Notes: generated from the letters alone by a model not told the origin. Shown: positions 4,133 to 19,998, numbered from the stretch's first letter. The stretch: 64,000 nt of DNA from Paraphysomonas bandaiensis (GCA_965644295.1 CBFFRP010000079.1:1-64000), one strand, 5' to 3'. Numbers and translations are program-made.

Positions 4133-4138
4133 ATCCTG
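4133..4138. repeat. Left target-site duplication ATCCTG
   Basis: Identical hexamer at 19843-19848, directly outside the right TIR; an 8-bp reading TATCCTGA is possible if each TIR is 1 nt shorter. Confidence 0.9.
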
Positions 4139-4395
4139 ATATATTAGAAAAACCGGGGTTCTAGGACAAATTAAACATTTGTCTTAGAACACCTGTTTTT
4201 CTAATATAGATGATGTTGCCGATGTTCACCCATGAAATGTTCTAATGTATGACATTGGACTACGTTAGACTACAGTCCATTTCCCTACGGTGGAATTTTA
4301 GTGTATAAAAGTTTTAATAAATGAAAACTAAGGGGAGGGTCTTAGATTTATGAAAATTGTTAGACAATTGCAATGATAAGAGGAAGAAGATATTT
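4139..4395 (+). repeat. Left terminal inverted repeat (257 bp)
   Basis: Reverse complement of 19586-19842; one mismatch seen (4300 vs 19681). Confidence 0.97.
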
Positions 4396-4488
4396 CACAC
4401 CAAAATCATGAGATCTCATTTCACCTGGAAAATAATTTCGTTTAATTTTTCTCGGATTATTTTTTTCTTAACTATAATAAAACAAAAT

Positions 4489-4848
4489 ATGGAAATTTTC
4501 ATTGTGTACAAAATTACCGGAAGGCATACAAATAAAACATATTATGGAAAAACAATACTACCTGTAGAAAAGCGTCTTTCCCTTTATCTATTATCTTATA
4601 GATATTACAAAGAGACATATGGTTTACCTCCCTATCTCCCAGTTTTTGATATATTTCGAGAAAGTAATGATCTTGATAACGATATTGAAATTACAACAGT
4701 AACATCTGATTTAAGTAATTACAATGCAACCGAATTTAGAGATCTCTATATTCAGCGCGATAAAAACTGTTGTAATAAAAATAGATCAGGTTATACCATG
4801 AAGGAATATCTGGAAGAATATTATATATTAAAAAACCTGCTGCAATAA
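4489..4848 (+). CDS. GIY-YIG-like endonuclease, copy 1 (ATG at 4489 preferred over TTG at 4357)
   Basis: FIVYKITGRHTNKTYYGKT...KRLS, terminal CCNK; shares its upstream leader with the paralog at 4895. Confidence 0.75.
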   Translation: MEIFIVYKITGRHTNKTYYGKTILPVEKRLSLYLLSYRYYKETYGLPPYLPVFDIFRESNDLDNDIEITTVTSDLSNYNATEFRDLYIQRDKNCCNKNRSGYTMKEYLEEYYILKNLLQ

Positions 4849-4894
4849 AAAATAGATCAGGATTATTTTTTTCTTAACTATAATAAAACAAAAT

Positions 4895-5314
4895 ATGAAA
4901 AATTTCATTGTATACAAAATCACCGGAAAGCATACAAATAAAATATATTATGGAAAAACATCGCTACCTGTAAAGAAGCGCCTTTCTCTTCATCTATCAG
5001 CTTATAGATTTTACAAAGAGTCATATGGTTTATCTTCTTATTTCTCAGTTTTTGATATATTTCGAGAAAGCAATGATCTTAAAAGCGATATTGAAATTAC
5101 AGTATTAACACCTGGTTTAAGTAATTACAATGCAGCAGCAATTGAGGATCACTATATTCAGCGAGATAAAAACTGTTGTAATAAAAATAGATCAGGTTTC
5201 ACCACAAGCAACATGAAGGAATATCAAAAAGATTATTGGGAAAAACATAAAAATAAAATTAATAAAATGAGACGTGAGAAATATGCTCAAAATAAAAAAT
5301 CTTGTGTACATTAA
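4895..5314 (+). CDS. GIY-YIG-like endonuclease, copy 2
   Basis: FIVYKITGKHTNKIYYGKT...KRLSLH...AIEDHYI...CCNK plus basic tail KEYQKDYWEKHKNKI; tandem paralog. Confidence 0.8.
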   Translation: MKNFIVYKITGKHTNKIYYGKTSLPVKKRLSLHLSAYRFYKESYGLSSYFSVFDIFRESNDLKSDIEITVLTPGLSNYNAAAIEDHYIQRDKNCCNKNRSGFTTSNMKEYQKDYWEKHKNKINKMRREKYAQNKKSCVH

Positions 5315-5317
5315 AAC

Positions 5318-5593
5318 ATGGAAAATAAAAAACGCGGACGTCCCATAAAATATAACTCGGAAGAAGAGCGAAAGCAAGCAAAGCGGTTACAAGATCAACT
5401 TTCATATAAACGAAGAAAATCACAGCAGAATGAAATTTTAGAAATACTATCTAATGATGAATCATCATCATCGACTTATGAACCCTCGGAAACTGGAACA
5501 TCAGTGTACACAAATACAGAAATCCGTCAAGAAGAGATAAAAATTGAAATTTACTCGGATAGTTTTAATTTGTGTTTGAGTATAAAGAAATAA
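5318..5593 (+). CDS. Small basic protein with AT-hook-like N-terminus
   Basis: KKRGRPIKYNSEEERKQAKR; similar to the pPolB N-terminus. Confidence 0.6.
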   Translation: MENKKRGRPIKYNSEEERKQAKRLQDQLSYKRRKSQQNEILEILSNDESSSSTYEPSETGTSVYTNTEIRQEEIKIEIYSDSFNLCLSIKK

Positions 5594-5620
5594 AATATTG
5601 ACAATAATAAAAAGTATACA

Positions 5621-5887
5621 ATGTCTTATTTATACGGAGATGAAATTAACACTAGCTCAGATGATGAATGGAATAATTATGAAGATTACATTGGTTTCAG
5701 AATAACTAATTCACCACCCCGCAGACAGTCAAACCGCAGGCAGAGAAATACCCGACGGGTGAATAGACAACAAGCTACATCACCAGTTAGCATTACAGAA
5801 CACCCGAATATAACAGAAGAGCAAAATACACCCGCTTGTCCCAGTTCCCCAGTGTCAGTTACAGACCATCCAAATCTGTCTGATTAA
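5621..5887 (+). CDS. Hypothetical viral protein (acidic/Arg-rich, low complexity)
   Basis: ATG-initiated ORF tightly packed in the viral gene run; internal repeat SPVSITEHPN / SPVSVTDHPN. Confidence 0.45.
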   Translation: MSYLYGDEINTSSDDEWNNYEDYIGFRITNSPPRRQSNRRQRNTRRVNRQQATSPVSITEHPNITEEQNTPACPSSPVSVTDHPNLSD

Positions 5888-6007
5888 CAAAAGAGTATAA
5901 AGAAAAAATATTTTTATAGAATAAAAAGAGTATAAAGAAAATATATCTTGTATATAATAAGAACAAGTTTAAACGCTATATTTAAAAACAATCTTGATAA
6001 TAATAAC

Positions 6008-9000
6008 ATGCCAAGACCTTTGAAATACAAAAACGATGAGGAGAGAAAAGCCGCCCGCAATAAACGAACTAAACAACGATCAGGGAAAGAGGCACTGGAA
6101 AAGATGTTATTAGATATCATTTATCAAAAGGGTGAGCATACAGAATATTCACCTATTACAAAGTTGACTGCACGTAAGTTACTGTTAAGACTACCTCGCA
6201 TGCGGAAAGATGAGGTTGGCTTAATTGGTTCACTTATTGAACATAATGAAAAATTTAATGTTGGAACCCTTAAAACAAAATTAAAGAAAATCCGTAAAAC
6301 TGCGGTGATGAAGGGTAAACTAGATAAGGATGATATTGTTGAAACCACAGCAATAAATGGTTCAATGATAAGAGTTGAGTTGAAAGCTGGATTAGGTGAA
6401 AGCGTTGATGTTGACCGTGTTTCAGATGATCTCGGTAAGATCCTTGACGAATTAATCCAAAAACACGGCTCAAATACAATGTTTCGGATATCCACTCAAA
6501 CAACACTTTTATTTAAGGTTGAGATTGAGAAGGACGTGTGGGTGGAAGAAAGAGGCTTCCACTCCACTGCTGGTAGAAATGTAAGTAGGGGTAATGTATT
6601 GGATTTTATTACATATATAACATCTGAAATTGAAAAGACAATTGAATCATGGAAGAGAAGCTCTTATGTTTTTTTAGGAGTTGAGAAGATCGATTTACGA
6701 ATTACACCCATGCGACCTATATATGCAGGAGGGAGTAAACCAACTTGTTTACCTACACCAAAAGATCTGGCAGTGAAGAAATGTATTATTAATGTTGAAT
6801 GCACAGATGGTCGCTGTCTTGAATATTGCATGGTATTGGAAAACCACTATGATGATATTATTAAGGAGGGGAAAAAACCCCAGCGTATTAGTTCATTTAA
6901 AAAAGAATGGTTCGATGAGATTGTAAAACCAAAGAATGTAAGTTATCCTATTAACTTATACAAACACATCCCGCAATATGAACGATTAAACAATATAAAA
7001 ATTACTGTTCTGGGTTACAATGAAGAACATAATGATAAGAAAGGTTTATACACAATGTATTCATCCATGTCAAAATACGAGAAAACAATAACCCTGGTTT
7101 ACATATGCGACAGTAAAACACAAAATGAACATTTTCTATGGGTGCGCAACGTATCCCGTCTTTTTAATAATGGTGAACAGAAAAACGCATACCATTATTG
7201 TATGAATTGTTTGAATGCAAAATATGAAACACATGAAGCACTTAAAGAACATGAAGCACTATGTTTAAAAAACCAATCCTCTAAAGCTATCTTACCACAA
7301 GAGAGAGAAGATGGTACTAAACCTGTTCAGAAGTTTAATAGTTTTTATAAAACACTCAAGCATCCATTTACAATATACACTGATTTTGAGTCAACGCTAA
7401 TAAAAAATAAAGATGGTAAAAGGGGGAATACTGATAAATACCAAATACACAAACCAAATTCATTTGGTTTAAAGTTTAATTGCATTCACGAGAATCACAA
7501 TAAACCAGTAATTACATTTAGACATTGTGATGAAGAGGTAGTTCTTCGCACATTTGTAGAACAAGTTGAAGAGTATGCAAAGGAGGCGTACAACATTAGT
7601 CAATTATACCCTCATTATCACGGGTCAACAAATGATAAAATATGTGAGCTATGTAGAAACTATACAAAGGATGGATTGAAACCTTTACACGATACTATAA
7701 CAGGTGAATTAATAAATTGGGTATGCCCACGCTGTTTAAAATCCCATATGAAAAACAAAAATTTTATCCCTGTTTATGCTCATAACTTAAAAGGATACGA
7801 TAGTCATTTGTTTATTCGAGCTTTAGCTCAATACGGATACACACAGGAAAAAGATAGCACTATTAGTTGTATTCCCAATAATGAGCAAAAGTATATCACT
7901 TTTAGTAAGAAAATTGAGGTGGATAGGGTAATTACTTCAATAGAGGTAGATGAAAACGGGAACCATGTAAAAACATTTAATCCGATATACTTTGAAATAC
8001 GATTTCTTGACACCAACGCGTTTTATTGTTCAAGCCTAGAAAAAGTGATATCTAATTTAACAGCAGAACCTAAAGGAGATATCTCTAAATTACGCAGGAT
8101 CTTAAAAAGCACATCTGAAGCTTTTCCGGATGATGAACAATTCCAACTGATGATTAGAAAAGGAGTATACCCATATGAATGGGTGGATGCAGATTATAAA
8201 TTTATGTCGTCCTCATTACCCCCGAAAAACGCGTTTTTCTCTACACTAGTAGGCGGAGGAATTTCAGATTCCGAGTATAAGCACGGGCAAATGGTGTGGG
8301 ATTCATTCAAATGTCAAACTTTCAAGGATTACCATAATCTCTATTTAAAAGCAGATGTTTTACTTTTAGCAGACTCATGGGAGGTTTTTCGTGATAATAT
8401 TATGAGTATGTTTAATTTAGATTGTGTGTATTCATATACAGCACCTGGGCTAGCATGGGAAGCTTATCTTAAAAAATCAGGAGTTGAACTCGAGCTTCTC
8501 ACCGATATTGATATGTATATGTTTTACGAAAAAAGCATACGCGGTGGTGTTTCTCTAATTACTAAACGACTAGCAACTGTATCAGAAGAAGAGATGAAGA
8601 AACCTCCATTAGAGCGCAATGAAGCTCTGTTATATTTAGACGCTACCAATCTATATGGGTGGGCAATGATTCAGAACTTACCCTATGGTGGATTTGAATG
8701 GGATGATGATGTAAACAAATACACAGAGGAATATATTAAAAGTTTAAAGGATGATGGGGATGAGGGGTATACTCTTGAAGTAGACTTAGAGTATCCAAAA
8801 GAATTACACGATCTCCATAACGACTACCCTTTATGCCCGGAAAGACTTCTTCCTAAGAACGAAATGCTTAATCAATGGCAGATACGCTATGATTCACGCG
8901 GGAACGAAATTCATGAGACAACCCCCAAACTTTGCCCTAATTTACAAGATAAGGAAAAATATGTAATTCACTACCGTGCTCTCAAATTAGCACTTCAACT

Positions 9001-9904
9001 CGGTTTGAAGCTAAAGAAGGTTCACCGTGTGATGCAGTTTTATCAGTCACCTCATATGAAAGAATATATCATGGGCAACACAAAGCTACGAGCTCAAACA
9101 AAGGATGCTTTCAAACGCAATTTATATAAATTACTTAACAATGCAATTTTTGGTAAATCAATGGAAAATGTACGCCAACGCATTAACTTTGAACTGGTTA
9201 CTCAAAGGCCAACAGAGTATAAATTAAGACGAATGAAAGATTTTACAATATTCTCAGAAAATTTGGTTGGTGTTCACCAATATAAATCATTTGTGAAATT
9301 AAATAAACCTATCTATGTGGGTTCAGCTATTTTAGATCTTTCTAAAGTACTCATGCAAGGCTTTCACTATAATGCAGTGCAACCAAGTATTCACGAGATG
9401 GGTGGTAGTGTAGAGTTACTTTTTACTGATACAGATAGTTTATGTTATCATATCAAGGGCTGTAATCCCTATGAATTCATGCATAAGAATAAGAGTTACT
9501 TTGATATGTCAACTTTCTTTGAAAAAGAAAACAAGTACTATGATGAGGAAAATAAAGGTGTTCTCGGAAAAATGAAAGTAGATAAGGATCAAGTAATTAA
9601 AGAGTTTGTAGGTTTACGACCTAAATGTTATAGTTTAAAATATGAAGGTGATAAAGAGGATTACACTTGTAAAGGTGTAAACCGGGCTGCTCGTGCATCA
9701 ATATCCCATCAGGCGTATAAGGAAACACTCTTAACCTTACAATCATTCCCTGTAGTACAAAATAGCATTCGATCCTATAATCATGATGTTTACACTATAC
9801 AACAAGGGAAAATAGGATTATCTGCATATGATAACAAACGGTATATATATGATGATCGAATCCATACCCTATCATTTGGACATTACAAATTATCTCAAAA
9901 CTAA
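6008..9904 (+). CDS. Protein-primed family B DNA polymerase (pPolB) with long N-terminal terminal-protein region
   Basis: ExoI DFES, ExoII HNLKGYD, KGVYPYEW, ExoIII YLKAD, Pol A DATNLYG, Pol B KLLNNAIFGK, Pol C TDTDS, KCY, KGV; first ATG at 6008 (track start TTG at 5948). Confidence 0.97.
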   Translation: MPRPLKYKNDEERKAARNKRTKQRSGKEALEKMLLDIIYQKGEHTEYSPITKLTARKLLLRLPRMRKDEVGLIGSLIEHNEKFNVGTLKTKLKKIRKTAVMKGKLDKDDIVETTAINGSMIRVELKAGLGESVDVDRVSDDLGKILDELIQKHGSNTMFRISTQTTLLFKVEIEKDVWVEERGFHSTAGRNVSRGNVLDFITYITSEIEKTIESWKRSSYVFLGVEKIDLRITPMRPIYAGGSKPTCLPTPKDLAVKKCIINVECTDGRCLEYCMVLENHYDDIIKEGKKPQRISSFKKEWFDEIVKPKNVSYPINLYKHIPQYERLNNIKITVLGYNEEHNDKKGLYTMYSSMSKYEKTITLVYICDSKTQNEHFLWVRNVSRLFNNGEQKNAYHYCMNCLNAKYETHEALKEHEALCLKNQSSKAILPQEREDGTKPVQKFNSFYKTLKHPFTIYTDFESTLIKNKDGKRGNTDKYQIHKPNSFGLKFNCIHENHNKPVITFRHCDEEVVLRTFVEQVEEYAKEAYNISQLYPHYHGSTNDKICELCRNYTKDGLKPLHDTITGELINWVCPRCLKSHMKNKNFIPVYAHNLKGYDSHLFIRALAQYGYTQEKDSTISCIPNNEQKYITFSKKIEVDRVITSIEVDENGNHVKTFNPIYFEIRFLDTNAFYCSSLEKVISNLTAEPKGDISKLRRILKSTSEAFPDDEQFQLMIRKGVYPYEWVDADYKFMSSSLPPKNAFFSTLVGGGISDSEYKHGQMVWDSFKCQTFKDYHNLYLKADVLLLADSWEVFRDNIMSMFNLDCVYSYTAPGLAWEAYLKKSGVELELLTDIDMYMFYEKSIRGGVSLITKRLATVSEEEMKKPPLERNEALLYLDATNLYGWAMIQNLPYGGFEWDDDVNKYTEEYIKSLKDDGDEGYTLEVDLEYPKELHDLHNDYPLCPERLLPKNEMLNQWQIRYDSRGNEIHETTPKLCPNLQDKEKYVIHYRALKLALQLGLKLKKVHRVMQFYQSPHMKEYIMGNTKLRAQTKDAFKRNLYKLLNNAIFGKSMENVRQRINFELVTQRPTEYKLRRMKDFTIFSENLVGVHQYKSFVKLNKPIYVGSAILDLSKVLMQGFHYNAVQPSIHEMGGSVELLFTDTDSLCYHIKGCNPYEFMHKNKSYFDMSTFFEKENKYYDEENKGVLGKMKVDKDQVIKEFVGLRPKCYSLKYEGDKEDYTCKGVNRAARASISHQAYKETLLTLQSFPVVQNSIRSYNHDVYTIQQGKIGLSAYDNKRYIYDDRIHTLSFGHYKLSQN

Positions 9905-9923
9905 TTATAGTACCTTAAAGTAA

Positions 9924-10982
9924 ATGAGTAAGTTGCATAAGGTGTTATCGAAATTATACTATACTTCTTTTGATTCTATTCAACGACTTTATGAAAGAGC
10001 GAAAGAACACTTACCCGATCTTCAAATTGCTGATGTAAAAGACTTTGTGGAGAAACAAGCTGTTTTTCAAATAGCTCATAAACCTAAGCGGAAAAAACAT
10101 ATGTCTATTCCTATTGTGAGTCATGTTGAAAACTCATTTCAGGGGGATCTTATGTTTTTGACTCAATATAAAAAGCATAACTCAGGGTATCATATTATTC
10201 TCGTTTTAGTAGATGTGAGTAGTCGTTATTTATTCGCATACCCTCTCAAGGATAAGGGGCTTACCTCTGTAAAAAGAGCATTTGAACAATGGTTTGAAGA
10301 TGTTACGGAGATAACAGGATTCCCACCTATGAAATTAATATCAGATCAGGAGGCTTCTTTTAATTCAAAGGAGATGAAAAAATGGTTTCAATCAAAGGAG
10401 GTTAATTATCGATCTTATCCTAGCGGGCAACATCGGGTGAGATTATGTGATAATATCATAAGAACAATTCGTACAAAGGTGATGAAATATTTTATCTCCT
10501 ATGAAACTCTACGATGGATTGAAAAGGATGGATCACGCAATGTGATTCAAGGGATTGCAAGACGGTATAATAATAAACCACATATCAAATTCCTTGGTGA
10601 ATATAGTCCTAAGGAAATATATACAAATCCAGAGCTTCAAAATGATTTCCGGCAAATGACAATTCGTGAACGTAAGTATATTCTTAAACAAATAAGTGAT
10701 AACTTAAAACCTGGTGATGTAGTACGCATTCAACTCTCTAAAAAACTCTTTCGGAAAACCACAGGAGTGAATTTTAGCTCTCAAACGTATACGGTAATGG
10801 AAGTGCGAAATACAAATGCGACCATTATGGATCAATCAGGTGAGGAACAAAAAATCCATAAAAAGTACCTTATGAAAGTTCATCCTAATATTGAGCGTAA
10901 AGTAGACTCGGTGGAGGAGATGTTTGCACGTAATGAAAAACAAAACAAAATCCGACGTGATTTAAATGAACTCTATTATTAA
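9924..10982 (+). CDS. Polinton-type rve (retroviral-like) integrase, D-D(34)-D variant
   Basis: FQGDL...GY..ILVLVDVSSRYLFAYPLKDK...ISDQEASF...CDNIIRTIR...YNNKPH...LKPGDVVRI. Confidence 0.93.
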   Translation: MSKLHKVLSKLYYTSFDSIQRLYERAKEHLPDLQIADVKDFVEKQAVFQIAHKPKRKKHMSIPIVSHVENSFQGDLMFLTQYKKHNSGYHIILVLVDVSSRYLFAYPLKDKGLTSVKRAFEQWFEDVTEITGFPPMKLISDQEASFNSKEMKKWFQSKEVNYRSYPSGQHRVRLCDNIIRTIRTKVMKYFISYETLRWIEKDGSRNVIQGIARRYNNKPHIKFLGEYSPKEIYTNPELQNDFRQMTIRERKYILKQISDNLKPGDVVRIQLSKKLFRKTTGVNFSSQTYTVMEVRNTNATIMDQSGEEQKIHKKYLMKVHPNIERKVDSVEEMFARNEKQNKIRRDLNELYY

Positions 10983-10990
10983 TAAAGACC

Positions 10991-11947
10991 ATGGTTAAAC
11001 ATCATTATACAAACGAAACATTTCTATATGTAATTGCATCTACGAACCGCACAGAAGGAGATAATGCAGATTGTAACATCCCGATGGGATGTTATTTACC
11101 ACACGATGTATCCTATTTTATATGTACACCTATCTTTTTCAATAGCACCAATCGATTATTAGACATACCACCTTCAGGATGTTTTATAGTGGAAGGGGAG
11201 GGGATTGTACAAAATTCAATCAGCACGCATGGGAAAAACCATCAATGGGGTGCTATCACGCCACCTATTCGCTCGGGAGAGGTTCATTATAGAGCAGCAC
11301 TTAGTTTTAATACAGATAGCTTTCAATTTATTTGTCGTAATTTTAATAATGAGAGCATACACTTTGTTCTTCGCAATTGTGATGGATTCACACAGAATTG
11401 TGTTGCGTTGAGTGGTTGGAAAAAGTGTTGGATTTTATACCTTGCAATGACACCTATTCGTGAATGTCCACAGCGGGGATTTGTTCCCTCGGAAAGTTTT
11501 ACTTATGTGATATCAAGTAGTCAGGCAATAGAAGGGAGCGCACACGATTGTTTGATTAACTTACCTGCAATTATTAAACCTTACCATCGATATTTTGTGG
11601 ATGTGATTGCGTGTATTGTAAACAACGACTCTATTTCCCTAGGACCTGTGAGGTTTATTAATATTTACTCATATGGCTGGAAAGACTCAGGATATGGTTA
11701 TGGAGGACTACAAGGTGATCCTGAAGCAATGATTATTGGTTCACCTTATTGTTTAGATTCTCAAGAACCCAGTCACTTTAGTGGAGATAGCGCTTGTTTT
11801 ATTGTAAATAATATGGACCGTATACGCCCTGTTCGCTTTCAAATGTATCAACCACATGGACCACCTGTTGAAGCAGCTGAAATTAATTTAAATGGGGTAA
11901 CAACTATTTTTACCATTATTTGTCGGATAACACCGGTTGTTGAATAA
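10991..11947 (+). CDS. Protein of two tandem penton-like (single jelly-roll) domains
   Basis: The halves resemble each other (FLYVIASTNRTEGDNADCNIP / FTYVISSSQAIEGSAHDCLINLP; ends WILYLAMTPI / FTIICRITPV) and ORF 11968; fold is inferred. Confidence 0.55.
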   Translation: MVKHHYTNETFLYVIASTNRTEGDNADCNIPMGCYLPHDVSYFICTPIFFNSTNRLLDIPPSGCFIVEGEGIVQNSISTHGKNHQWGAITPPIRSGEVHYRAALSFNTDSFQFICRNFNNESIHFVLRNCDGFTQNCVALSGWKKCWILYLAMTPIRECPQRGFVPSESFTYVISSSQAIEGSAHDCLINLPAIIKPYHRYFVDVIACIVNNDSISLGPVRFINIYSYGWKDSGYGYGGLQGDPEAMIIGSPYCLDSQEPSHFSGDSACFIVNNMDRIRPVRFQMYQPHGPPVEAAEINLNGVTTIFTIICRITPVVE

Positions 11948-11967
11948 TTTTCTATGCTAAAGTAATC

Positions 11968-12429: not shown

Positions 12430-12432
12430 GTA

Positions 12433-13743
12433 TTATATTTGTACCAAATCAATGTGTGTTTTCCAAAATTTAGAACCTGAACCTACTGTTTGCATATCCA
12501 CATATGTATGAATCTCAAATGTCCAGTTGTCTGACACATCCTCCACTGTAAATATTAATGGTGAGAGCGCACATCCAAATCGATTCACACTTCCACGATT
12601 TGAATCCCATACCCCAGGTGCAAATAACCCCGTTCTTTCTAGTGTACCATTTTTCTTTACTAACACGCGACCTAGAATTTCCGTCCAACTTGCAACCCCC
12701 ATAATATCAAAAGAAACTTGGAGAAAATATCGTCCTGTATACTGAATATACCCAGATGAATCAATCATATTGGAATCTCCTCCTGTAGGTGTTGTACTTA
12801 ACTCTGATGAAGTCATATAATGTCCGCCGCTTGATGTTTGATATGTTACGTTATATTCCATCGATGACCAGTATGTGACCGGACCATCAATTTCCTCCCA
12901 ATAACAGTTTTTCTTTGAAACGGTAAGTGTATCTAGATTTGTTCGATCGGTGGTGGTAAAAGCGGTTGTTTGTTCTGTAGTGTCTGGGAATTCAACTTTT
13001 TGATAACAATTCAAATGATCTACCCGAATCTCATCAATTGCACCTCCTCCGTCTGCTTTGAGAATGGTATTGATTGGAAATGTAAACTCATTTAAACTTC
13101 GACTTACACTTGACCATAAAGTTACTAAAGAGTCATAGCTTGATTTTAATGTATTTGTAAACGCCGTGCTTTGCTGAGTGAAATCATAAAACGATATTAC
13201 GGAAGACACCCCTAATAAATCAATATCCCCGAGTACTTCTAAATCATTACAATTCACCTGAGATGAAAAAGTAGTTACCCCTATCGATTTACTTTGATAT
13301 GTAGTGATTTCTTCAAGGGTAGCATTGGATGCTTCCAGATTAGTTAGCCTTGCATCGTGTGAATCATGTGATGTATCTAATAAATCAACTGTTGTTTCTA
13401 AATTCGAAAGTTCAGTTTCAATGGTGTCAAGACGTGTTTGATTGCTTGTAATTTCACTTTCCGCATTATCAAGACGTGTTTGATTGCTTGTAATATTTCC
13501 ATTTATAACAGAAAATTGATCTTGGATATTGGAGCTAACTCCGCTAAGTCTACTCACTTCCAAGGGTGTGATTTCGATTGTGTTGACTGTGATTGATTCA
13601 TCAATTGTTAAATTACTTGTTTCCACATTTTGAATATATGTGTTTTCAGAGTGAACACCTGTAGCGTGTAATTCATCTAAATGGAGTGAAGAAAGACCAC
13701 TTAGACTTGCTGTTTGAATGTTATGATAACCATTGGTATTCAT
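12433..13743 (-). CDS. Putative virion fibre (coiled-coil shaft, beta-rich head)
   Basis: Heptad repeats ITSNQTRLD x2, repeated F-x-D-x-T-x-Q-x-TAFT, C-terminal TGRYFL beta-sandwich-like segment; next to the major capsid gene. Confidence 0.6.
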   Translation of the reverse strand: MNTNGYHNIQTASLSGLSSLHLDELHATGVHSENTYIQNVETSNLTIDESITVNTIEITPLEVSRLSGVSSNIQDQFSVINGNITSNQTRLDNAESEITSNQTRLDTIETELSNLETTVDLLDTSHDSHDARLTNLEASNATLEEITTYQSKSIGVTTFSSQVNCNDLEVLGDIDLLGVSSVISFYDFTQQSTAFTNTLKSSYDSLVTLWSSVSRSLNEFTFPINTILKADGGGAIDEIRVDHLNCYQKVEFPDTTEQTTAFTTTDRTNLDTLTVSKKNCYWEEIDGPVTYWSSMEYNVTYQTSSGGHYMTSSELSTTPTGGDSNMIDSSGYIQYTGRYFLQVSFDIMGVASWTEILGRVLVKKNGTLERTGLFAPGVWDSNRGSVNRFGCALSPLIFTVEDVSDNWTFEIHTYVDMQTVGSGSKFWKTHIDLVQI

Positions 13744-13759
13744 TTACTTTATCCAATAT

Positions 13760-15223
13760 TTAATATTGTACGAGCATTGTTCCATCCTGACAAATGATAA
13801 CTGCATCGTGCATTGCAAATGTGTCATAGTGAACAGAAACGTTTCCACCTGTATTTTGGGTGTGTTTTACATTTAAGAAAATATCTTCTGTACTGGAGTT
13901 ATACCCCTGGAATATATCTTCAGGTGAAGCACCGGAATATGATTCTAAATCTGCACCGATAATAAAATGAGGTTCACTTGCAGATGAGTGGATATATGTT
14001 GCTTCCTCAGCATTTGCAGTAGGTGCGGTTACATCATAAGCACTTATATCAATGTTAGGTTCATGATTCATATCGGAAACACTACCAATGGCCTTTAAGC
14101 ACTCAATAAAGAATTCTGTTCGACTTCGAGGAGGTTTGGCGGGAACTGTTTTGCTCCCTAACCGTAAATAGTACTCTGTTAGTCCAAAATGGGTGGAACC
14201 TGAAGCATGATAAGTAATTGCACCTGCGTGTTTGCTTCGCGGAATGGTAAACAATGATTTTAAAGATGAAAACCGTGCGGGGATTGGAATACTAACTTCG
14301 GTTTCTACACCATCAATAAGAGTAGCGTTATATGCATAATGACTAAAACGAGGTACAACAAAACGAATCATTTCACCTGAATGTCCTTCAATGATCTGCA
14401 TGGCGGAATCACCTAGCTCAACCATCTGGGCAACATATTCCACATTGCTTACCGAAAAACTATCTAGTGCAAGTTCTGAGTTTAAAAACTTAGAGGGACT
14501 ATTTTGAAGTTGAAGTTCCAATCGAAGGCCTGCTCCGCTGTTTGACATTGCGAAAAGAGGGATATACTTTTGACTTAGGGATCCTACAATTGAGAGTAAG
14601 TTAATACAATATGTTCTCGCAAGGGTATCCCCATTGGCTGCTATATCTGCAAATTCGTTGGCTGCTGCATCATCCCAAAGACGTTCACCTGCATATATTT
14701 TCGTTACCTTATTTGTTTTATCATGTGTTGAAATATTTGCGAGTTCAGCGTTGGTTGGATCACCTGCTACTCCAGCGACAACAACTGGTTTGCGAACATC
14801 ACTAAAATATTCATTAGAAACACCCGCCATAATAGAAGCTTTACCTGATGCATCACCTGACTGTTGGAGAGCCATCAACTTGGAAACAAGCACCGAGTAT
14901 TCATCTAAGTCCTCAATGAGATTGGATCCGTGCCATAAGCGTAATCTTCGTATAACCCCGTGAGCTCCTGCTTGACCTAAGCGTACAAAGGCATTCGCAG
15001 CTGCTCCGTTGGTTACTGTTAAATCAAATTTCAAAACACTTTCTGTTCCTGCGAGAACCGTGTTATTAATACATGGAATTGTTAAATTAATTGTGCTTCC
15101 ATCTGTAAATGGACCCGACTGATTTGGACGTACGTGACTTGTGTAACTGCGAGCAAATGCGCTCTCTTTTGAATTATCGTATTTTAAGTTGCGTGGAATC
15201 ATGTGTTTTAATATAACCGACAT
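13760..15223 (-). CDS. Major capsid protein (double jelly-roll, PLV type)
   Basis: 487 aa; MIPRNLKY...P...F..G.TI.L.IP...SVLKFDL...GVIRRLRL..G..LIEDLDEY pattern typical of PLV capsids; located in the morphogenesis module. Confidence 0.88.
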   Translation of the reverse strand: MSVILKHMIPRNLKYDNSKESAFARSYTSHVRPNQSGPFTDGSTINLTIPCINNTVLAGTESVLKFDLTVTNGAAANAFVRLGQAGAHGVIRRLRLWHGSNLIEDLDEYSVLVSKLMALQQSGDASGKASIMAGVSNEYFSDVRKPVVVAGVAGDPTNAELANISTHDKTNKVTKIYAGERLWDDAAANEFADIAANGDTLARTYCINLLSIVGSLSQKYIPLFAMSNSGAGLRLELQLQNSPSKFLNSELALDSFSVSNVEYVAQMVELGDSAMQIIEGHSGEMIRFVVPRFSHYAYNATLIDGVETEVSIPIPARFSSLKSLFTIPRSKHAGAITYHASGSTHFGLTEYYLRLGSKTVPAKPPRSRTEFFIECLKAIGSVSDMNHEPNIDISAYDVTAPTANAEEATYIHSSASEPHFIIGADLESYSGASPEDIFQGYNSSTEDIFLNVKHTQNTGGNVSVHYDTFAMHDAVIICQDGTMLVQY

Positions 15224-15229
15224 TTTTTA

Positions 15230-15334
15230 TTTAAGCAAAATGTGAACTAAGCAAAATGCAAACTCAAATGCGAACTAAGCAAAATGCAAACTCAAATGCA
15301 AACTCGAATCTAGCATTTAAGCAAAATGCGAACT
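15230..15334. repeat. Short tandem array (about 6 AAATGYRAACT units) upstream of the capsid gene
   Basis: ttaagcaaaatgtgaact aagcaaaatgcaaact caaatgcgaact aagcaaaatgcaaact caaatgcaaact ... ttaagcaaaatgcgaact. Confidence 0.85.
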
Positions 15335-15697
15335 TGTATCCGAATCTTTGTCTTCCTGTTTTTTACGAAAATTAATTTTCTCAAGGTCATGGTGAACTTT
15401 TCGTGCTTTCTGATTAAGTCGAGAAGCTTTATCCACCGTTTTCCGAGCTTTATGGAGTCCTTTTCCTGCTGCGCTGGAAAGGGCTCCACCTATCGGGATA
15501 TTTTTTAACCCTGCATCATTCAATATGCGTAAACCATCATCTGCCGCATCAATAACTTTATGAGCTTTTACCACTTTTCGATCTATCTGTTTTAACCCTG
15601 AGTTAATTTTCCTTCCGATTTGTTTACTATCCTTTTTTACCTTTTGACCGAGTCTTTTTGCTTGCTTGTTTATTTTTTTAATACCAACTCTTTTCAT
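15317..15697 (-). CDS. Small Lys-rich amphipathic protein (candidate core or membrane-lytic virion protein)
   Basis: LGQK / IGRK periodicity and IPIGGALSSAAGK; between penton and capsid genes; function inferred. Confidence 0.55.
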   Translation of the reverse strand: MKRVGIKKINKQAKRLGQKVKKDSKQIGRKINSGLKQIDRKVVKAHKVIDAADDGLRILNDAGLKNIPIGGALSSAAGKGLHKARKTVDKASRLNQKARKVHHDLEKINFRKKQEDKDSDTSSHFA

Positions 15698-15720
15698 CTG
15701 TTTTTAATAATGTAAAGATT

Positions 15721-16440
15721 TTATTTATATCGAATCACTAATGTACAGGACCAATGTTGACCATTTAAATCCACTATTCTACCTCTTTGATCGAGTAATC
15801 GTAAGTGTGTATTGACTAAATTCTCAATTGAGTTTACCTGAGACATTAAATCCCCTTGATAGTAAATGACACTATTTGGAGGAACCGAGTTTTGAATGCT
15901 ACAAAGGTAACATGCGTTCCGGGTGTCGTTGCTTGATAAATTCTTCGTAATAAAATTGCTTGAGGTGATATGTAATGTACGAATAGGGAACAAATTGATA
16001 TTTGTATTGCTGGTGATAGTTTGATTAGATGATGAATAAGGTTGTCCCTCGCTAAGTCCAAGCAACTCAAAACATGTAGATGTTGCGTATAATGTAAATT
16101 CATAATTTGCATGGGTGATGATGTATGTATTTGTTGTGGATTGATAAGTGAAAATTAACCCTGTATTGTTTTGGAGAACTGTTTTTAAAGTGTTCACATT
16201 ATAATTTCCTTGAGGGATGGTGAATTGTTGAATTCCACCGTTGTTAATCTCATATACTAACAACTGATTGATATTATCTACATTATAGAAACTTGTGGGT
16301 ATTTCCGCGGATTTTACCCCTACTGTTAATTCAGTAATTTGCTTAGGTAAGTCTATCCTTGGTAAATGAAAAATTACATCGCTCGTGTTCTGATTGATTT
16401 GTAAACTGGCATCTCGAGAGTTTAGAAATACTTGGATCAT
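15721..16440 (-). CDS. Minor capsid (penton) protein
   Basis: VFLNSRD...SAEIPTSFYNV...IPQGNYN...LRLLDQRGRIVDLNGQHWSCTL, typical PLV/virophage penton pattern. Confidence 0.85.
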   Translation of the reverse strand: MIQVFLNSRDASLQINQNTSDVIFHLPRIDLPKQITELTVGVKSAEIPTSFYNVDNINQLLVYEINNGGIQQFTIPQGNYNVNTLKTVLQNNTGLIFTYQSTTNTYIITHANYEFTLYATSTCFELLGLSEGQPYSSSNQTITSNTNINLFPIRTLHITSSNFITKNLSSNDTRNACYLCSIQNSVPPNSVIYYQGDLMSQVNSIENLVNTHLRLLDQRGRIVDLNGQHWSCTLVIRYK

Positions 16441-16570
16441 TGCTTACTACTCTTGATAAAATGTTCTCGAGGATAATTTCGAATCCGGGAATGTGATCAT
16501 ATTCGCACCCTCCGAGTCTTTTATTTATTTCATCTATGTCAATGTGTAAACGATAATCATATTGCTCCAT
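16343..16570 (-). CDS. Possible small hypothetical protein overlapping the penton 5' end
   Basis: ATG 14 nt after the ATPase stop and fills the gap; no recognisable motif. Confidence 0.3.
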   Translation of the reverse strand: MEQYDYRLHIDIDEINKRLGGCEYDHIPGFEIILENILSRVVSNDPSISKLSRCQFTNQSEHERCNFSFTKDRLT

Positions 16571-16583
16571 TTTATATATGGAA

Positions 16584-17309
16584 TTATTTTATTTGAAGTT
16601 GGTTAAAGTTTTTATAAAATATGTTAGATACAATGTCGATATCCAGGTGATTATATGCTCGATCAAATACATAGTTGTATAACTCAATCGCTTGATCTTT
16701 TTTCATGCGGAGTAACTCTTCAGATACCAACTCAACTTCCTTACGGTTTCTAAACTGGAATATTGTGACATTTGTTAACATTTTACGTAGTGTTAATTCA
16801 AACAGATTGTAAGACTGAAGAGTAAATATAGTTGATAAACCAATGTGCCTTGATTTTACAATGATTTTCTTTAACAGTGTAACTATTTGTTTATCTTTCA
16901 AATCATTAGCAAAGTCATCTATGATTAATAGGGAATTCTCAACAGGTAATTTATTTTCGATGCTATGTTTTTTAAATAAAGCAACTTCTTCATAAATATC
17001 CATTAATACTCCATCTGTAAGCTCATGGTATTTTTTATCATGGTTTTCAAAGGGATGATCCTTCACAGATAAATAACTTGATTCTGGGGAAATAAAGTAA
17101 ATGTTATCAAATTTTCCTCTGTAGTACTTGCTTGACCTAAATAATGAGAGAAGGAGGGAGGATTTACCTGAGCCCGGTGCACCAATTAAAGCATAAACAA
17201 ACCCATTACGGTTTGGTAAGTTAGGGTGAATATTCGGGATAAATATAGACATTGCTTCTTTTACAGGTTGAATATTGGGTAAATTACTTGGTTGTTCTGT
17301 TATATGCAT
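16584..17309 (-). CDS. A32/FtsK-HerA family genome-packaging ATPase
   Basis: Walker A GAPGSGKS, Walker B LLIIDD, arginine finger KSRH, TLQ. Confidence 0.93.
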   Translation of the reverse strand: MHITEQPSNLPNIQPVKEAMSIFIPNIHPNLPNRNGFVYALIGAPGSGKSSLLLSLFRSSKYYRGKFDNIYFISPESSYLSVKDHPFENHDKKYHELTDGVLMDIYEEVALFKKHSIENKLPVENSLLIIDDFANDLKDKQIVTLLKKIIVKSRHIGLSTIFTLQSYNLFELTLRKMLTNVTIFQFRNRKEVELVSEELLRMKKDQAIELYNYVFDRAYNHLDIDIVSNIFYKNFNQLQIK

Positions 17310-17323
17310 TTATCTTACTTATT

Positions 17324-18445
17324 CTAATTATTTTTTATTTTACGTGGTCTACCTCTTCCTCTTTTTGCTGGAGGTGAGGGTGGTGGTGGTAAAAGTGGTG
17401 TTTGCGGGGATTTTGATTTTTCAGTCTGTGGAGATTGGGTAATATTTGAATCATCGAAATCTTCTATTGCTTTATGTGGTTTTGATTCGCTTTTTGCTTC
17501 TGCTTTTTCCCCCGCTTTCTTTTTTGTTTGAAATGCTGGTAATTCTTGATATTCCTCCTCGGTTATTGGGTTAGTACGTCTTGTACGTTGCACCTTTGGT
17601 ATTGTTTGTATCCCCTTTGGTGCTACATAATCTTCATCGGGAATTGATTCACTACTATCTGATGATAATGATAATGCATTAACTAGCCCACTATTTGGTG
17701 ATGATATACCAACCAACCCACTATGGGTATATTCTTTGCTTTGAGGAGTTTGTGGAGCTGCCGCTGTTAACGTAGAGTGTACATTTGATTGTTCTTCATT
17801 CATCTGCATGAACCGCTCACTTTCAGGTGTAAATGGGAATTGATTTCCACCCATCTGCATAAAGTGTTCGCTTTCAGGTGTGTGTGGTGTTTTTAGATTT
17901 TCTTCTTGTGGTGCGTGGTTAATTGGAGATAGCACATCAGGTGCTGTAGTGATATCAAAAGCTTTTCTCCGTTTCACATTTGTCTTAGGTTTCACCGGTC
18001 TTGTTATAAGGCTCCCGGTTTTGCTAACCTTTGTTGCTACTTTATTTTGATCAATTGCGTCTGCCACATGAAATGCAATGGCTTCGTTTCTTTCATTCCA
18101 AGCTCTTTTTAAATGATTTGATGATTCTGGTTGTTGTGATTCCGGTTTAGGTTTTGAGTTTTGTAAGAGTTCTAACTTTGCTTGAAGTAGTCCATCGTTT
18201 AACTTTTGTGTATCTGCTTTGTTTCCTAATCCAAACAATGGGTTTGTTGAAACATTCCCCTGAAGTGGTTTATCCGATTTCTCTTGAGGGATAAATAATC
18301 CTCTATCATTCTTTTTCTTTGCTTTCCTAACACCTTTCTTTTTCCGACGTGCTCGTAGCTTATTTTGTAGACGTCTTTTATCAATTCCATATAACTTTAC
18401 CAAATCATCGAGATTTAAGTATATATTATTTTTTGTTTTTCCCAT
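17324..18445 (-). CDS. Low-complexity basic protein with C-terminal AT-hook
   Basis: C-terminal KRGRGRPRK; internal repeat TPESE(H/R)FMQM x2; rich in S/T-P. Confidence 0.65.
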   Translation of the reverse strand: MGKTKNNIYLNLDDLVKLYGIDKRRLQNKLRARRKKKGVRKAKKKNDRGLFIPQEKSDKPLQGNVSTNPLFGLGNKADTQKLNDGLLQAKLELLQNSKPKPESQQPESSNHLKRAWNERNEAIAFHVADAIDQNKVATKVSKTGSLITRPVKPKTNVKRRKAFDITTAPDVLSPINHAPQEENLKTPHTPESEHFMQMGGNQFPFTPESERFMQMNEEQSNVHSTLTAAAPQTPQSKEYTHSGLVGISSPNSGLVNALSLSSDSSESIPDEDYVAPKGIQTIPKVQRTRRTNPITEEEYQELPAFQTKKKAGEKAEAKSESKPHKAIEDFDDSNITQSPQTEKSKSPQTPLLPPPPSPPAKRGRGRPRKIKNN

Positions 18446-18456
18446 TCTTTACTTTA

Positions 18457-18990
18457 CTAGCGAAAGAAATTATCGTATGTTTGAAATCGCTCTTTTCGAA
18501 CTCTTGCTCTGTTATTCGATTGACGCTTAGGTCCTCGTTTATAGTGTTCATATTCTTCGTCATCATAGTCATCATCCGAGTCATCCGATTCATCGTCAGA
18601 TTCACTGGATTCACTTTCCGATTCTTCCACAATAATCCGTGCTTTTGGTCTTCGTTTCTTTTTCCTAACGACTATAAATTGCTCATCGGGGGTTTCTTCC
18701 TCTTCTGAAGGAATTAACTTTGTAGTCACCATAGGTGTTTTAACTTTCTTCTTTTTTACTTGCTGATTTTCTTGTTGAACCAAGAGTTTTGAAGCCTCTA
18801 TCACCTTTTCTTTTTTCTTTGCCTCAATAGATGCTTTTCTCTTCTCGCGAACTTTTTCAAATGCTTTCATCTGTGCTTCACTTCGGGGTTTTTTAGGTTT
18901 GGTAAGAGGAGTTTGAATTTCCGGGGTATTTTCTTCAATTGGTGTTTCGATTGGTGCTTCGATTTGTTCGTTATCGTACGTATCGGACAT
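18457..18990 (-). CDS. Charged hypothetical viral protein (ATG at 18990; track start 19008)
   Basis: KPKKPRSEAQMKAFEKVREKRK helix and acidic tract; stop directly upstream of the next viral gene. Confidence 0.6.
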   Translation of the reverse strand: MSDTYDNEQIEAPIETPIEENTPEIQTPLTKPKKPRSEAQMKAFEKVREKRKASIEAKKKEKVIEASKLLVQQENQQVKKKKVKTPMVTTKLIPSEEEETPDEQFIVVRKKKRRPKARIIVEESESESSESDDESDDSDDDYDDEEYEHYKRGPKRQSNNRARVRKERFQTYDNFFR

Positions 18991-19034
18991 GTCTTTTAAT
19001 AATACCAAGAAAATAATTTGAACGTAAATTTAAT

Positions 19035-19586
19035 ATGTTGGTTATAATAAACATGCATCGTCAACCACCTGCACCGCCTAAAGAATCAAAACCTGAAGCT
19101 TATAACGAAATGAAAACACCGAGTATTATTCCCACCAGCGATAACCCCTTTAAGTATCAACCTGTACCTGAAGTAAGTCTTTACGGTACCAAACTTAAAG
19201 CTAACCATTTGTCCAAGAAAAATATACTATTTACTAATGAAGCTAACCAATTTGTAAATGCTGTTCAGGATGCCCTTTCCAAATTTGATAAAAACTCGAA
19301 TAGGTATAGTGAGGATATTTTACTCTTTTGTATGTCTGCATGTGAAAATGCAATCCTCGGTAAAAAACAGGGTGAATTAAAATTACAAATGGTAAAAGCA
19401 TGTGTGAAGCCATTCTTCAATAATGATGAATTACTAATTGAGAAATGGGTTTCGCTTCTTATGCCTAAAATTCTTAATTATAAATTCTGGAATCGTAACT
19501 TACGTAAGCTTGCTAGAATTTTTTTAAACTGTGTTTCGATGAAGCAACAAGCACCATCACCCGGCATGCAATCAAAACCTCTATAA
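19035..19586 (+). CDS. Hypothetical viral protein; stop codon at the inner edge of the right TIR
   Basis: Open 183-aa ORF divergent from the structural module. Confidence 0.55.
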   Translation: MLVIINMHRQPPAPPKESKPEAYNEMKTPSIIPTSDNPFKYQPVPEVSLYGTKLKANHLSKKNILFTNEANQFVNAVQDALSKFDKNSNRYSEDILLFCMSACENAILGKKQGELKLQMVKACVKPFFNNDELLIEKWVSLLMPKILNYKFWNRNLRKLARIFLNCVSMKQQAPSPGMQSKPL

Positions 19587-19842
19587 AATATCTTCTTCCT
19601 CTTATCATTGCAATTGTCTAACAATTTTCATAAATCTAAGACCCTCCCCTTAGTTTTCATTTATTAAAACTTTTATACACAAAAATTCCACCGTAGGGAA
19701 ATGGACTGTAGTCTAACGTAGTCCAATGTCATACATTAGAACATTTCATGGGTGAACATCGGCAACATCATCTATATTAGAAAAACAGGTGTTCTAAGAC
19801 AAATGTTTAATTTGTCCTAGAACCCCGGTTTTTCTAATATAT
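19586..19842 (-). repeat. Right terminal inverted repeat (257 bp)
   Basis: Reverse complement of 4139-4395. Confidence 0.97.
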
Positions 19843-19848
19843 ATCCTG
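19843..19848. repeat. Right target-site duplication ATCCTG
   Basis: Matches 4133-4138. Confidence 0.9.
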
Positions 19849-19998
19849 AACACAATGAAGGTCCTAAAGCAATATATAGGGTCCTGATATAGGGTCTGTG
19901 TGTATAGGGTCCTAAAAGTCAATGTAACCATGCATGTGACTCAATAGCGTGATACTATAGCCACGTAGATAGGGCATGGGAAATGCCACGTGGTCACA
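19849..19998 (-). repeat. First part of a Gypsy 3' LTR interrupted by the Polinton
   Basis: Minus-strand polypurine tract GGGGGAGGAGGCAG (19999-20012) directly followed by TGTGACCA; downstream of integrase 20182-21195; may continue at 4138 down to ~4091 (TGTG). Confidence 0.6.

Follow-up and report, generated by a model that had tools for sequence, protein, structure and literature searches.

The window, a 64,000-nt stretch of Paraphysomonas bandaiensis DNA, contains an inserted element of 15,704 bp (4139-19842). Its ends are formed by terminal inverted repeats (TIRs) of 257 nt at 4139-4395 and 19586-19842, the sole inverted repeat of at least 40 nt in a search of positions 3500-20500. Exactly one mismatch separates the two arms, and identity between them drops to 4 of 20 positions immediately inward of the TIRs. 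The terminal 28-mer occurred in none of 100 shuffles. A perfect target-site duplication (TSD), ATCCTG, flanks the element. The string common to both junctions is 8 nt long (TATCCTGA, 4132-4139 and 19842-19849) because the first and last TIR base are included in the overlap, and the 6-bp TSD is therefore ambiguous by 1 nt per side. Coding density reaches 92%, with 16 non-overlapping ORFs of 88-1318 aa, one doubtful overlapping ORF and very short, AT-rich spacers. The features are as follows (strand is given for coding features).

4133-4138: left TSD, ATCCTG, read directly, with the same hexamer at the right junction
4139-4395: left TIR, 257 nt, differing from the right arm at one site
4140-4208: sub-terminal palindrome within the left TIR (arm 28 nt, spacer 13 nt, arm 28 nt, 3 mismatches), with a mirror image at 19773-19841
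4357-4848, plus: GIY-YIG nuclease paralogue 1
4895-5314, plus: GIY-YIG nuclease paralogue 2, 139 aa (Pfam PF01541, E = 7.9e-5)
5318-5593, plus: basic protein, 91 aa, with an N-terminal basic motif like the polymerase N-terminus
5621-5887, plus: low-complexity protein, 88 aa
5889-5960: 35-nt tandem repeat, 2 copies, in the polymerase gene's upstream spacer
6008-9904, plus: polymerase (pPolB)
6350-6727, plus, bounds approximate: predicted terminal-protein domain of the polymerase
6755-7165, plus, bounds approximate: vOTU-like cysteine-peptidase domain of the polymerase, from invariant residues and model
9924-10982, plus: probable rve-family (retroviral-type) integrase, 352 aa (Pfam PF00665, E = 4.3e-7)
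10991-11947, plus: Cys-rich protein, 318 aa, with a ~150-aa domain duplicated in tandem
11968-12429, plus: 153-aa protein with one copy of that domain
12433-13743, minus: fibre- or spike-like protein, 436 aa
13760-15223, minus: major capsid protein (MCP), 487 aa
15238-15304: 28-nt tandem repeat, 2.4 copies, in the capsid gene's upstream spacer
15317-15697, minus: lysine-rich protein, 126 aa
15721-16440, minus: penton (minor capsid) protein, 239 aa
16343-16570, minus: 75-aa ORF, doubtful as a gene, overlapping the start of the penton gene
16584-17309, minus: A32/FtsK-type genome-packaging ATPase, 241 aa (Pfam PF04665, E = 1.8e-11, above cut-off)
17324-18445, minus: disordered Lys/Pro/Ser-rich orphan protein, 373 aa, with an AT-hook-like C-terminus
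18457-19008, minus: core gene product, 183 aa, of low complexity with alternating basic and acidic stretches
19035-19586, plus: helical protein, 183 aa, with a hydrophobic C-terminus
19586-19842: right TIR, 257 nt, pairing with the left arm
19843-19848: right TSD, ATCCTG, read directly

A preliminary description of this DNA had reported one difference in 257 TIR sites, a perfect 6-bp TSD, about 16 uninterrupted ORFs and a convergence of the two strands' genes across a 3-nt gap at 12429/12433. All four were confirmed, the first by comparison of the arms. Its division of the genes, with replication and integration on the plus strand and morphogenesis on the minus strand, held for these functions, except that the plus-strand ORFs at 10991-12429 and 19035-19586 belong to neither replication nor integration.

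The polymerase was assigned because of Exo and Pol motifs read in the sequence, its relatives and its N-terminal fold; the protein itself has no Pfam match and no PDB sequence match. PF03175 was recorded on about 20 of the 120 matches listed among its 6598 relatives. Both a terminal-protein domain and a vOTU-like domain are predicted in its N-terminal part. The AlphaFold model of the former has a beta-alpha-beta-beta-alpha-beta fold resembling a little finger/PAD, for which the best Foldseek PDB matches were the Y-family polymerases Dbh, kappa, eta and Pol IV (about 120 columns, E = 1e-3 to 1e-2, probability 0.9-1.0), in agreement with the description of polinton-type pPolBs (PMC11071308). For the vOTU-like domain, Foldseek gave no independent fold match, the multi-domain search being dominated by the terminal-protein domain. 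Asp267, Cys270 and His375 are invariant across 57 sequences, and in the model (pLDDT >90) the Cys opens a helix (270-286) and the His lies in the fourth strand (373-379), the arrangement published for vOTUs (PMC11071308). In polinton-type pPolBs, the proposed role of this domain is release of the terminal protein, not capsid maturation (PMC11071308).

The integrase directly follows the polymerase, as it does on the related contigs L083 and L086. Its PF00665 score (30.6 bits) lies just under the curated cut-off of 32.6, and its catalytic positions read Asp, Asp, Asp instead of Asp-Asp-Glu; among relatives the third position is Glu in three and Asn in two. The perfect 6-bp TSD argues that rve-type integration happened. 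Upstream lie the two GIY-YIG paralogues, which have N-terminal motifs in common and match the same region of contig L038. Members of the paralogue 2 family were found in 49 of the 86 related loci. The ORF of paralogue 1, without a Pfam match of its own, begins within the TIR, and its true start is likely near 4489. By our own reading, this paralogue has an odd start and an altered residue at a catalytic-looking position. The sole homologue of the 91-aa basic protein is encoded by the ocean contig L085.

The morphogenetic trio of double jelly-roll MCP, single jelly-roll penton and A32-like ATPase is complete. The MCP was recognized by its model (pLDDT 87, pTM 0.86), 187 relatives and Foldseek matches to PBCV-1 Vp54 and to the capsids of SGIV, EhV, Sputnik, mavirus and ASFV (E = 1e-17 to 1e-12). 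Within this ranking, NCLDV capsids were best (E~1e-17), with Sputnik and mavirus lower (mavirus E~1e-12). The double jelly-roll on which the preliminary description had staked its reading of 13760-15223 is thus what the model folds into. PF16903 was detected in 20 of 57 members of the MCP family, and 150 IMG/VR viral contigs encode relatives with 32-44% identity, most of them together with PLV-type (Polinton-like virus) primase-helicases. The penton assignment comes from its occurrence in 79 of the 86 loci and from the family profile, which matches PBCV-1 P1v1 (E = 2.3e-7) and P1 (E = 0.89); DUF5901 was detected in 26 of 62 family members. The 75-aa ORF overlapping this gene is conserved in the ocean contig L001, yet no gene was called there. 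The packaging ATPase has visible Walker A and B motifs and is present in 76 of the 86 loci. The fibre-like protein combines an N-terminal coiled coil (Pfam matches) with a beta-rich C-terminus, and its homologue in the relative L002 has a recorded PF07484 Collar domain.

Among the remaining genes, the minus-strand 183-aa core gene is the most widespread (67 of 86 loci, usually adjoining the ATPase); its product is probably DNA-associated, and its alignment contains no conserved Cys or His. Homologues of the lysine-rich 126-aa protein were found in 15 loci and of the plus-strand 183-aa helical protein in 29, the latter with only one Glu and one Lys invariant. The disordered 373-aa protein contains no Cys and has no homologue in the 86 loci. 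The ~150-aa domain of the 318- and 153-aa proteins occurs in two tandem forms among 28 representatives and is weakly linked to the penton (hhalign probability 49% and 28%). In L002, the homologues of both genes share a strand with the capsid and fibre-like genes and come immediately behind them. The 318-aa protein is possibly virion-associated.

Relatives of the element were found in metagenomes; no match came from an animal, human or crop. An ocean contig (L001, ENA ERZ907739, PRJEB4352) has the same gene order and is 96-98% identical in DNA over ATPase, penton and MCP, the penton protein being 100% identical; its most diverged gene is the fibre-like gene, with 85.5% nucleotide identity and a dN/dS of 0.15. 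For L085, identity is 96% in the GIY-YIG region and 77% in the polymerase. Since L001 falls to 85.5% in one gene and L085 to 77% in another, even the closest relatives are mosaics. L083 (ENA ERZ4214608, 19,149 bp) and L086 (JGI 3300042868, 18,641 bp) are more distant, with protein identities to the element of ~40% (MCP) and ~45% (pPolB). They encode the ATPase, homologues of the penton (~250 aa) and of the MCP, then a ~1300-aa pPolB with a 356-aa rve integrase immediately behind it, and differ in a phospholipase-like gene and extra large ORFs. Across the genes compared with the ocean relatives, dN/dS was 0-0.16 (MCP 0.055, 126-aa protein 0.059; against L085, GIY-YIG paralogue 2 0.055 and pPolB 0.16). 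These ratios show a lineage under purifying selection, which would have acted until the insertion or shortly before it. Each of the seven genes with relatives matches them over its full length and is free of stops and frameshifts. The insertion is young, intact and real.

An Ulp1/adenain-type maturation protease could not be detected in the element by profiles and residue conservation, with the 436-, 373-, 318-, 153-, 126-, 91- and 88-aa proteins not folded. No ORF matched a protease Pfam family even at E = 0.1, alignments of the conserved unknown families contain no invariant Cys/His pair, and the 373-aa, minus-strand 183-aa and 126-aa proteins have no Cys at all. Neither the gene families widespread in the clade nor the records of L083 and L086 (18-19 kb) include a protease family. 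A cysteine-peptidase signature was seen solely within the polymerase, in its vOTU-like domain. The preliminary claim of a missing maturation protease stands for the Ulp1/adenain type, with this signature as a qualification. We consider it improbable that the element is a true Polinton/Maverick (Polintoviricetes) whose Ulp1-type protease has diverged too far to be recognized. The unfolded ORFs could hide such a protease and all other hallmarks are present (pPolB with terminal-protein and vOTU domains, rve, TIRs, 6-bp TSD, MCP, penton and ATPase); however, the profile searches, the lack of invariant or of any Cys, and the likewise protease-free records of related complete contigs argue against it. 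So do the typical PLV primase-helicases of most relatives with the same capsid, the PF16903 matches of the capsid relatives and the best structural matches to NCLDV capsids, as reported for PLVs. This lineage seems to complete its cycle without a dedicated Ulp1-type protease for capsid maturation.

The non-canonical third catalytic residue of the integrase and the odd start and altered residue of GIY-YIG paralogue 1 would fit an old, domesticated or decaying insertion that merely looks intact. With TIR arms differing at 1 of 257 sites, no broken gene and a dN/dS of 0-0.16 against relatives whose DNA differs by just 2-4% across the capsid module, this is a very improbable explanation. Even less credible is a free virus genome misjoined into a host contig during assembly. 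The near-identical ocean sequence implies that free or cell-associated copies exist outside the assembly, but complete TIRs with a perfect host duplication on both sides are what integration leaves behind, unlike a chimeric join, and L002 is embedded in a 206-kb contig, where it adjoins a retrotransposon. A tentative possibility, unlikely although of more weight than these, is a virophage-like satellite expressed only through a co-infecting giant virus, the integrated copy being an inducible host defence. Some PLVs and mavirus are described as acting in this way. The element encodes no RNA polymerase, very short AT-rich spacers separate its genes, the capsid and polymerase genes are each preceded by tandem repeats, and the motif TAAAGTAA stands just before four start codons (0.16 expected). 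The evidence from this motif is thin, however, as it is found at 4 of 16 genes; the window contains no giant-virus sequence, and the capsid is not of the virophage type, with Sputnik and mavirus ranking below NCLDV capsids.

Of the known systems compared, the closest to the element are published PLVs (PMC7805220, PMC10120064, PMC12220804). These are 15-30 kb long, with TIRs of a few hundred bp and TSDs of 5-7 bp (6 bp for rve), and have an MCP/penton/ATPase core without a maturation protease, capsids nearest to NCLDV, free-standing GIY-YIG genes, interchangeable replication modules and nearby retrotransposons. PLVs with the 'Polinton configuration' (pPolB, RVE, MCP, mCP, ATPase) were described by Bellas and Sommaruga (2021, PMC7805220), endogenous PLVs of protists by Bellas et al. 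(2023, PMC10120064) and cryptophyte PLVs in PMC12220804. According to the published surveys, pPolB and rve occur in PLVs, a protease-less morphogenetic module is typical of them, TSDs are 6 bp for rve, retrotransposons are found near insertions and the capsids are structurally closest to NCLDV. For the three-copy ~150-aa domain and the orphan 373-aa protein we found no description among published PLVs. Polintons/Mavericks (Polintoviricetes, including adintoviruses) have in common with the element a pPolB with terminal-protein and vOTU domains, rve, TIRs, a 6-bp TSD, double and single jelly-roll capsid proteins and an A32 ATPase. In contrast to them, the element has no detected Ulp1/adenain-type protease, its host is a protist and not an animal, and its capsid relatives are PLV contigs that mostly carry a primase-helicase instead of pPolB. 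Mavirus-type virophages, which integrate in a marine flagellate, likewise have a pPolB with terminal-protein and vOTU domains, rve, TIRs and a jelly-roll capsid, but the mavirus capsid is the weaker structural match (E~1e-12 against E~1e-17 for NCLDV). Of the virophage (Maveriviricetes) core, the element has neither a virophage-type MCP nor a detected cysteine protease.

Taken together, the region is very probably an endogenous, protease-less PLV of a marine-type protist, with an NCLDV-like capsid and a polinton-type replication and integration module. It is probably of the Aquintoviricetes type, the name given in recent classifications to protease-less PLVs with NCLDV-like capsids. The linear 15.7-kb genome with its 257-nt TIRs falls in the PLV range of about 14-40 kb. 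Established knowledge of these protein families suggests the following cycle. The integrase would link host DNA, with a stagger of 6 bp, to the ends of the TIRs, and the N-terminal domain of the polymerase would prime replication at the TIRs, after which the vOTU domain would cut it off. Capsid and penton proteins would build an icosahedral shell, to be filled by the packaging ATPase and decorated by the fibre-like protein and possibly also by the ~150-aa repeat proteins, while the basic proteins of low complexity are probably carried along with the DNA. The preliminary view of an intact, young PLV with capsid, penton, ATPase, pPolB and rve is supported. Its suggestion of an undescribed lineage is not: the pPolB/integrase and PLV-type capsid kit is already present on L083 and L086, relatives of the capsid number in the hundreds in metagenomes, L001 shares 96-98% of its DNA sequence with the element over ATPase, penton and MCP, and pPolB with rve, protease-less modules and 6-bp duplications are already known from published PLV surveys. 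The element is a clear-cut representative of a kind of which recent surveys have already reported large numbers.

The region contained one long inverted repeat, whose arms (4139-4395 and 19586-19842) delimit the element. These terminal inverted repeats (TIRs) each measure 257 nt and show one mismatch between them; just inside the arms, identity drops to 4 of 20 positions. The terminal 28-mer of the TIR occurred 0 times in 100 shuffles. Immediately outside both arms lies ATCCTG (4133-4138 and 19843-19848). Because the first and last TIR bases prolong the match, the string common to both junctions is 8 nt, so that the reading as a 6-bp target site duplication (TSD) is ambiguous by 1 nt at either side. 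Between the TIRs, 16 non-overlapping ORFs and one doubtful overlapping ORF were identified, 92% of the 15,704 bp being covered; a 3-nt gap separates the convergent ORFs that end at 12429 and 12433, and none of the genes of the element is broken. Its GC content is 34.9%; the flanks have 40-43% and host ORFs 44-50%. No further copies or fragments of the element were found in the remainder of the 64-kb window. The TIR, TSD, ORF and convergent-gap observations of the preliminary description are thus confirmed, and the near-identical arms, the perfect TSD and the lack of broken genes bear out its view that the element is a genuine polinton-like virus (PLV), intact and of recent integration. It is ordinary in kind. 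Additionally, each genome end carries an imperfect palindrome (4140-4208 and 19773-19841), in which the terminal 28 nt of the TIR recur inverted 13 nt further inward with 3 mismatches; these palindromes could form hairpins or provide paired binding sites.

The virion genes were assigned as follows.

Major capsid and penton genes of the element
13760-15223, minus strand: major capsid protein (MCP), 487 aa, assigned by family and predicted fold
15721-16440: penton protein, 239 aa, present in 79 of the 86 related loci

Nearly all of the 187 scored MCP relatives are unnamed metagenomic proteins, and 20 of 57 family members matched PF16903, the N-terminal domain of large-DNA-virus capsid proteins. 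Sequence-level PDB searches gave no significant match for the MCP or for the 436-aa fibre-like protein. The AlphaFold model of the MCP computed on the family alignment was confident (pLDDT 87, pTM 0.86), and its best matches (E = 1e-17 to 1e-12) were the double jelly-roll capsid proteins of PBCV-1, Singapore grouper iridovirus, EhV-201, Sputnik, faustovirus, ASFV and mavirus. Hence the double jelly-roll proposed earlier for 13760-15223 is supported by the predicted structure. The penton family profile matches the PBCV-1 penton variant P1v1 (E = 2.3e-7), and a 241-aa ORF matches the A32 packaging ATPase family with a score over the Pfam cut-off. Exact look-ups of the MCP, the ATPase and the host ankyrin protein found no record.

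The 436-aa protein is coiled-coil and beta-rich and is probably a fibre or spike; its homologue in L002, a more distant relative, has a Collar domain. Its gene is the fastest-evolving of the element. When the gene (12433-13743, minus strand) was compared with its counterpart in the marine metagenome contig L001 (3183-4556), DNA identity was 85.5%, while that of the adjacent capsid genes was 96-98%; the product encoded in L001 has 21 more residues. Such divergence suggests that a host-recognition gene is evolving faster or has been exchanged.

The 1318-aa polymerase ORF (pPolB) probably starts at 6008. Its own Pfam and PDB sequence searches, including a search of the polymerase profile against the PDB, yielded no significant match, nor did its sub-regions match Pfam. 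The family B exonuclease and polymerase motifs are present in order. Its relatives, about 1,300 aa in length, number more than 6,500, with PF03175 in about 20 of the 120 listed and PF02945 in some. In the N-terminal third of an alignment of 57 of these relatives, Asp267, Cys270 and His375 are among the invariant columns, followed by a Cys/His cluster and then by the Exo I Asp/Glu. The AlphaFold model of residues 1-471 (pLDDT 80 overall, >90 across residues 250-420) places Cys270 at the opening of a helix and His375 in the fourth strand of the next sheet. The best PDB matches of this model were Y-family polymerases over about 120 columns; for the vOTU part, the fold search with the 471-residue model gave terminal-protein-domain matches only and no independent vOTU match. 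As modelled, the Cys/His arrangement and the Y-family-like fold match the published architecture of polinton-type pPolB, whose protease has been proposed to detach the terminal protein (PMC11071308). A short basic motif is common to a 91-aa ORF (5318-5593, plus strand) and the pPolB N-terminus (6008-6080, plus strand), and iterative searching drew the homologue of the 91-aa ORF in the related locus L085 into the polymerase family.

The 352-aa ORF matches the rve integrase family slightly below the cut-off (E = 4.3e-7). Its third catalytic residue is Asp, with Glu in three relatives and Asn in two. The 139-aa ORF is a GIY-YIG nuclease, and the preceding ORF is its paralogue.

A dedicated maturation protease of the Ulp1/adenain type was not found in the element. 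No ORF had a protease Pfam match at E ≤ 0.1, and there is no protease among the widespread gene families of the clade. Two ORFs were considered as the missing enzyme and rejected: the 183-aa core gene beside the ATPase (18457-19008; 67 of 86 loci) encodes a low-complexity basic/acidic protein in which neither Cys nor His is conserved, and in the conserved family of the other 183-aa ORF (19035-19586, plus strand) the invariant residues are one Glu and one Lys only. Cysteine is absent from the 373-aa, the minus-strand 183-aa and the 126-aa proteins. The evidence for the lack of this protease, as claimed in the preliminary description, is strong as far as Pfam and Cys/His conservation go but not exhaustive, since seven ORFs were left unfolded.

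Relatives of the MCP are encoded by 150 IMG/VR viral contigs. The 86 fetched loci share a core of capsid, penton, ATPase and the 183-aa low-complexity protein, and most of these relatives replicate with a PriCT-2/DUF5906 primase-helicase. A supposed absence of pPolB and integrase from all related viral contigs was rejected, because the loci extend only to 10 kb from the capsid match and because two of them, L083 (19.1 kb) and L086 (18.6 kb), carry the pairing. Both show the combination of the element: ATPase, penton homologue and capsid homologue, then a pPolB of ~1300 aa directly followed by a 356-aa rve integrase. The literature covers each interpretive point. Switching of replication modules is frequent in every PLV group (preprint 10.64898/2026.06.19.733378); rve integrases yield duplications of 6 bp, PLVs of the Aquintoviricetes type typically have a reduced morphogenetic module, and GIY-YIG genes commonly occur as free-standing ones (PMC12220804); TIRs and neighbouring retrotransposons are frequent among endogenous copies of 15-30 kb, and the capsids of PLVs are similar to those of NCLDVs (PMC10120064). 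The union of pPolB and integrase with a PLV-type capsid is therefore a known pattern, and the suggestion that it marks an undescribed lineage could not be upheld. No identifiers matched when we tried to place the capsid in a named PLV group via the supplement of PMC7805220.

The closest relatives allowed estimates of selection. L001 (PRJEB4352) has the gene order of the element, with 96-97.6% DNA identity over the ATPase, penton and capsid genes, and L085 is 96% identical over the GIY-YIG region and 77% over the polymerase. Compared with these two loci, dN/dS was 0-0.06 for capsid, penton, ATPase, the 126-aa protein and GIY-YIG; the fibre-like gene and the polymerase had values of about 0.15. 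Judged by these low ratios, the PLV lineage has evolved as a functional virus. One further contig, IMGVR_UViG_3300033073_001022 (32,208 bp), came up in both orientations, the match coordinates being identical (L011 and L012), and contains several genes twice, in mirror positions; it resembles a head-to-head duplication or two inverted genome copies assembled together.

A domain of ~150 aa is present as a single copy in the 153-aa ORF and as two copies in the 318-aa ORF. It has 28 representatives among 1.84 billion proteins, PDB and Pfam searches gave no match, and the repeat family has no invariant Cys or His. As a candidate penton-like jelly-roll, it could not be linked to the penton: the hhalign probability of 49% dropped to 28% once a deeper profile was used. 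In L002 it follows the capsid and fibre-like genes, a position that suggests a structural role. We regard as rather unlikely a joint reading in which a PLV lineage now circulating in the ocean was caught as a provirus in a protist lineage without a sequenced close relative, the fibre-like gene evolves much faster than the capsid, and the three domain copies may represent a new, group-specific kind of capsid-associated (vertex or spike) protein.

From the families involved, a life cycle can be proposed. The rve integrase would insert the genome with a 6-bp stagger. Replication would be protein-primed at the TIRs by pPolB's own N-terminal domain, which the vOTU domain would then free. Capsid and penton proteins would assemble the shell, the A32 ATPase would package the DNA, the 436-aa protein would probably supply the fibre or spike, and the basic low-complexity proteins probably travel with the DNA. 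The octamer TAAAGTAA lies within about 12 nt upstream of four start codons (9924, 11968, 13743 on the minus strand and 18445 on the minus strand), where 0.16 were expected, and may be a shared promoter or initiator element; a variant lies upstream of the ATPase gene. The only sizeable tandem repeats of the element are found upstream of the capsid gene (15238-15304; 28 nt × 2.4) and the polymerase gene (5889-5960; 35 nt × 2). Together with the octamer, these repeats are the sole hints as to autonomous or giant-virus-dependent expression.

The host is eukaryotic. Its long, uninterrupted ORFs encode an ankyrin protein, a WD40/EF-hand protein, an HI0933-like flavoprotein and, across three ORFs, NAT10. 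The best relatives of the long WD40/EF-hand gene are 45% identical, and the best named one, from Ochromonas, 38%. No result indicated a genome of an animal, a human or a crop. No rRNA, tRNA or Rfam family was detected within the 64-kb window. To the left of the insertion, at a distance of 0.9 kb, is a 561-aa ORF with Integrase_H2C2 and rve domains (1542-3227, minus strand), which represents the integrase portion of an LTR retrotransposon; L002, within a 206-kb contig, likewise adjoins a Ty3/Gypsy-type element with a full polyprotein. The NAT10 (RNA cytidine acetyltransferase) gene (48679-52135, minus strand) consists of three consecutive ORFs, two with a 4-nt overlap; this suggests either short introns or a frameshift, the genome being poor in introns otherwise. 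The complete HI0933-like ORF (57207-58568, minus strand) stands amid eukaryotic genes and belongs to a mostly bacterial family; the host may have acquired it horizontally long ago.

The element leaves the current view of these viruses unchanged. As a clean reference copy with complete boundaries, in which the two ends, the duplication and all genes are intact, it documents a PLV lineage that is known elsewhere solely from fragmentary metagenomic contigs, and it links this lineage to a cellular host genome. It also shows the primase-helicase and the pPolB/rve module as alternatives in one capsid lineage and represents a well-defined case for the study of capsid assembly without an Ulp1-type protease.
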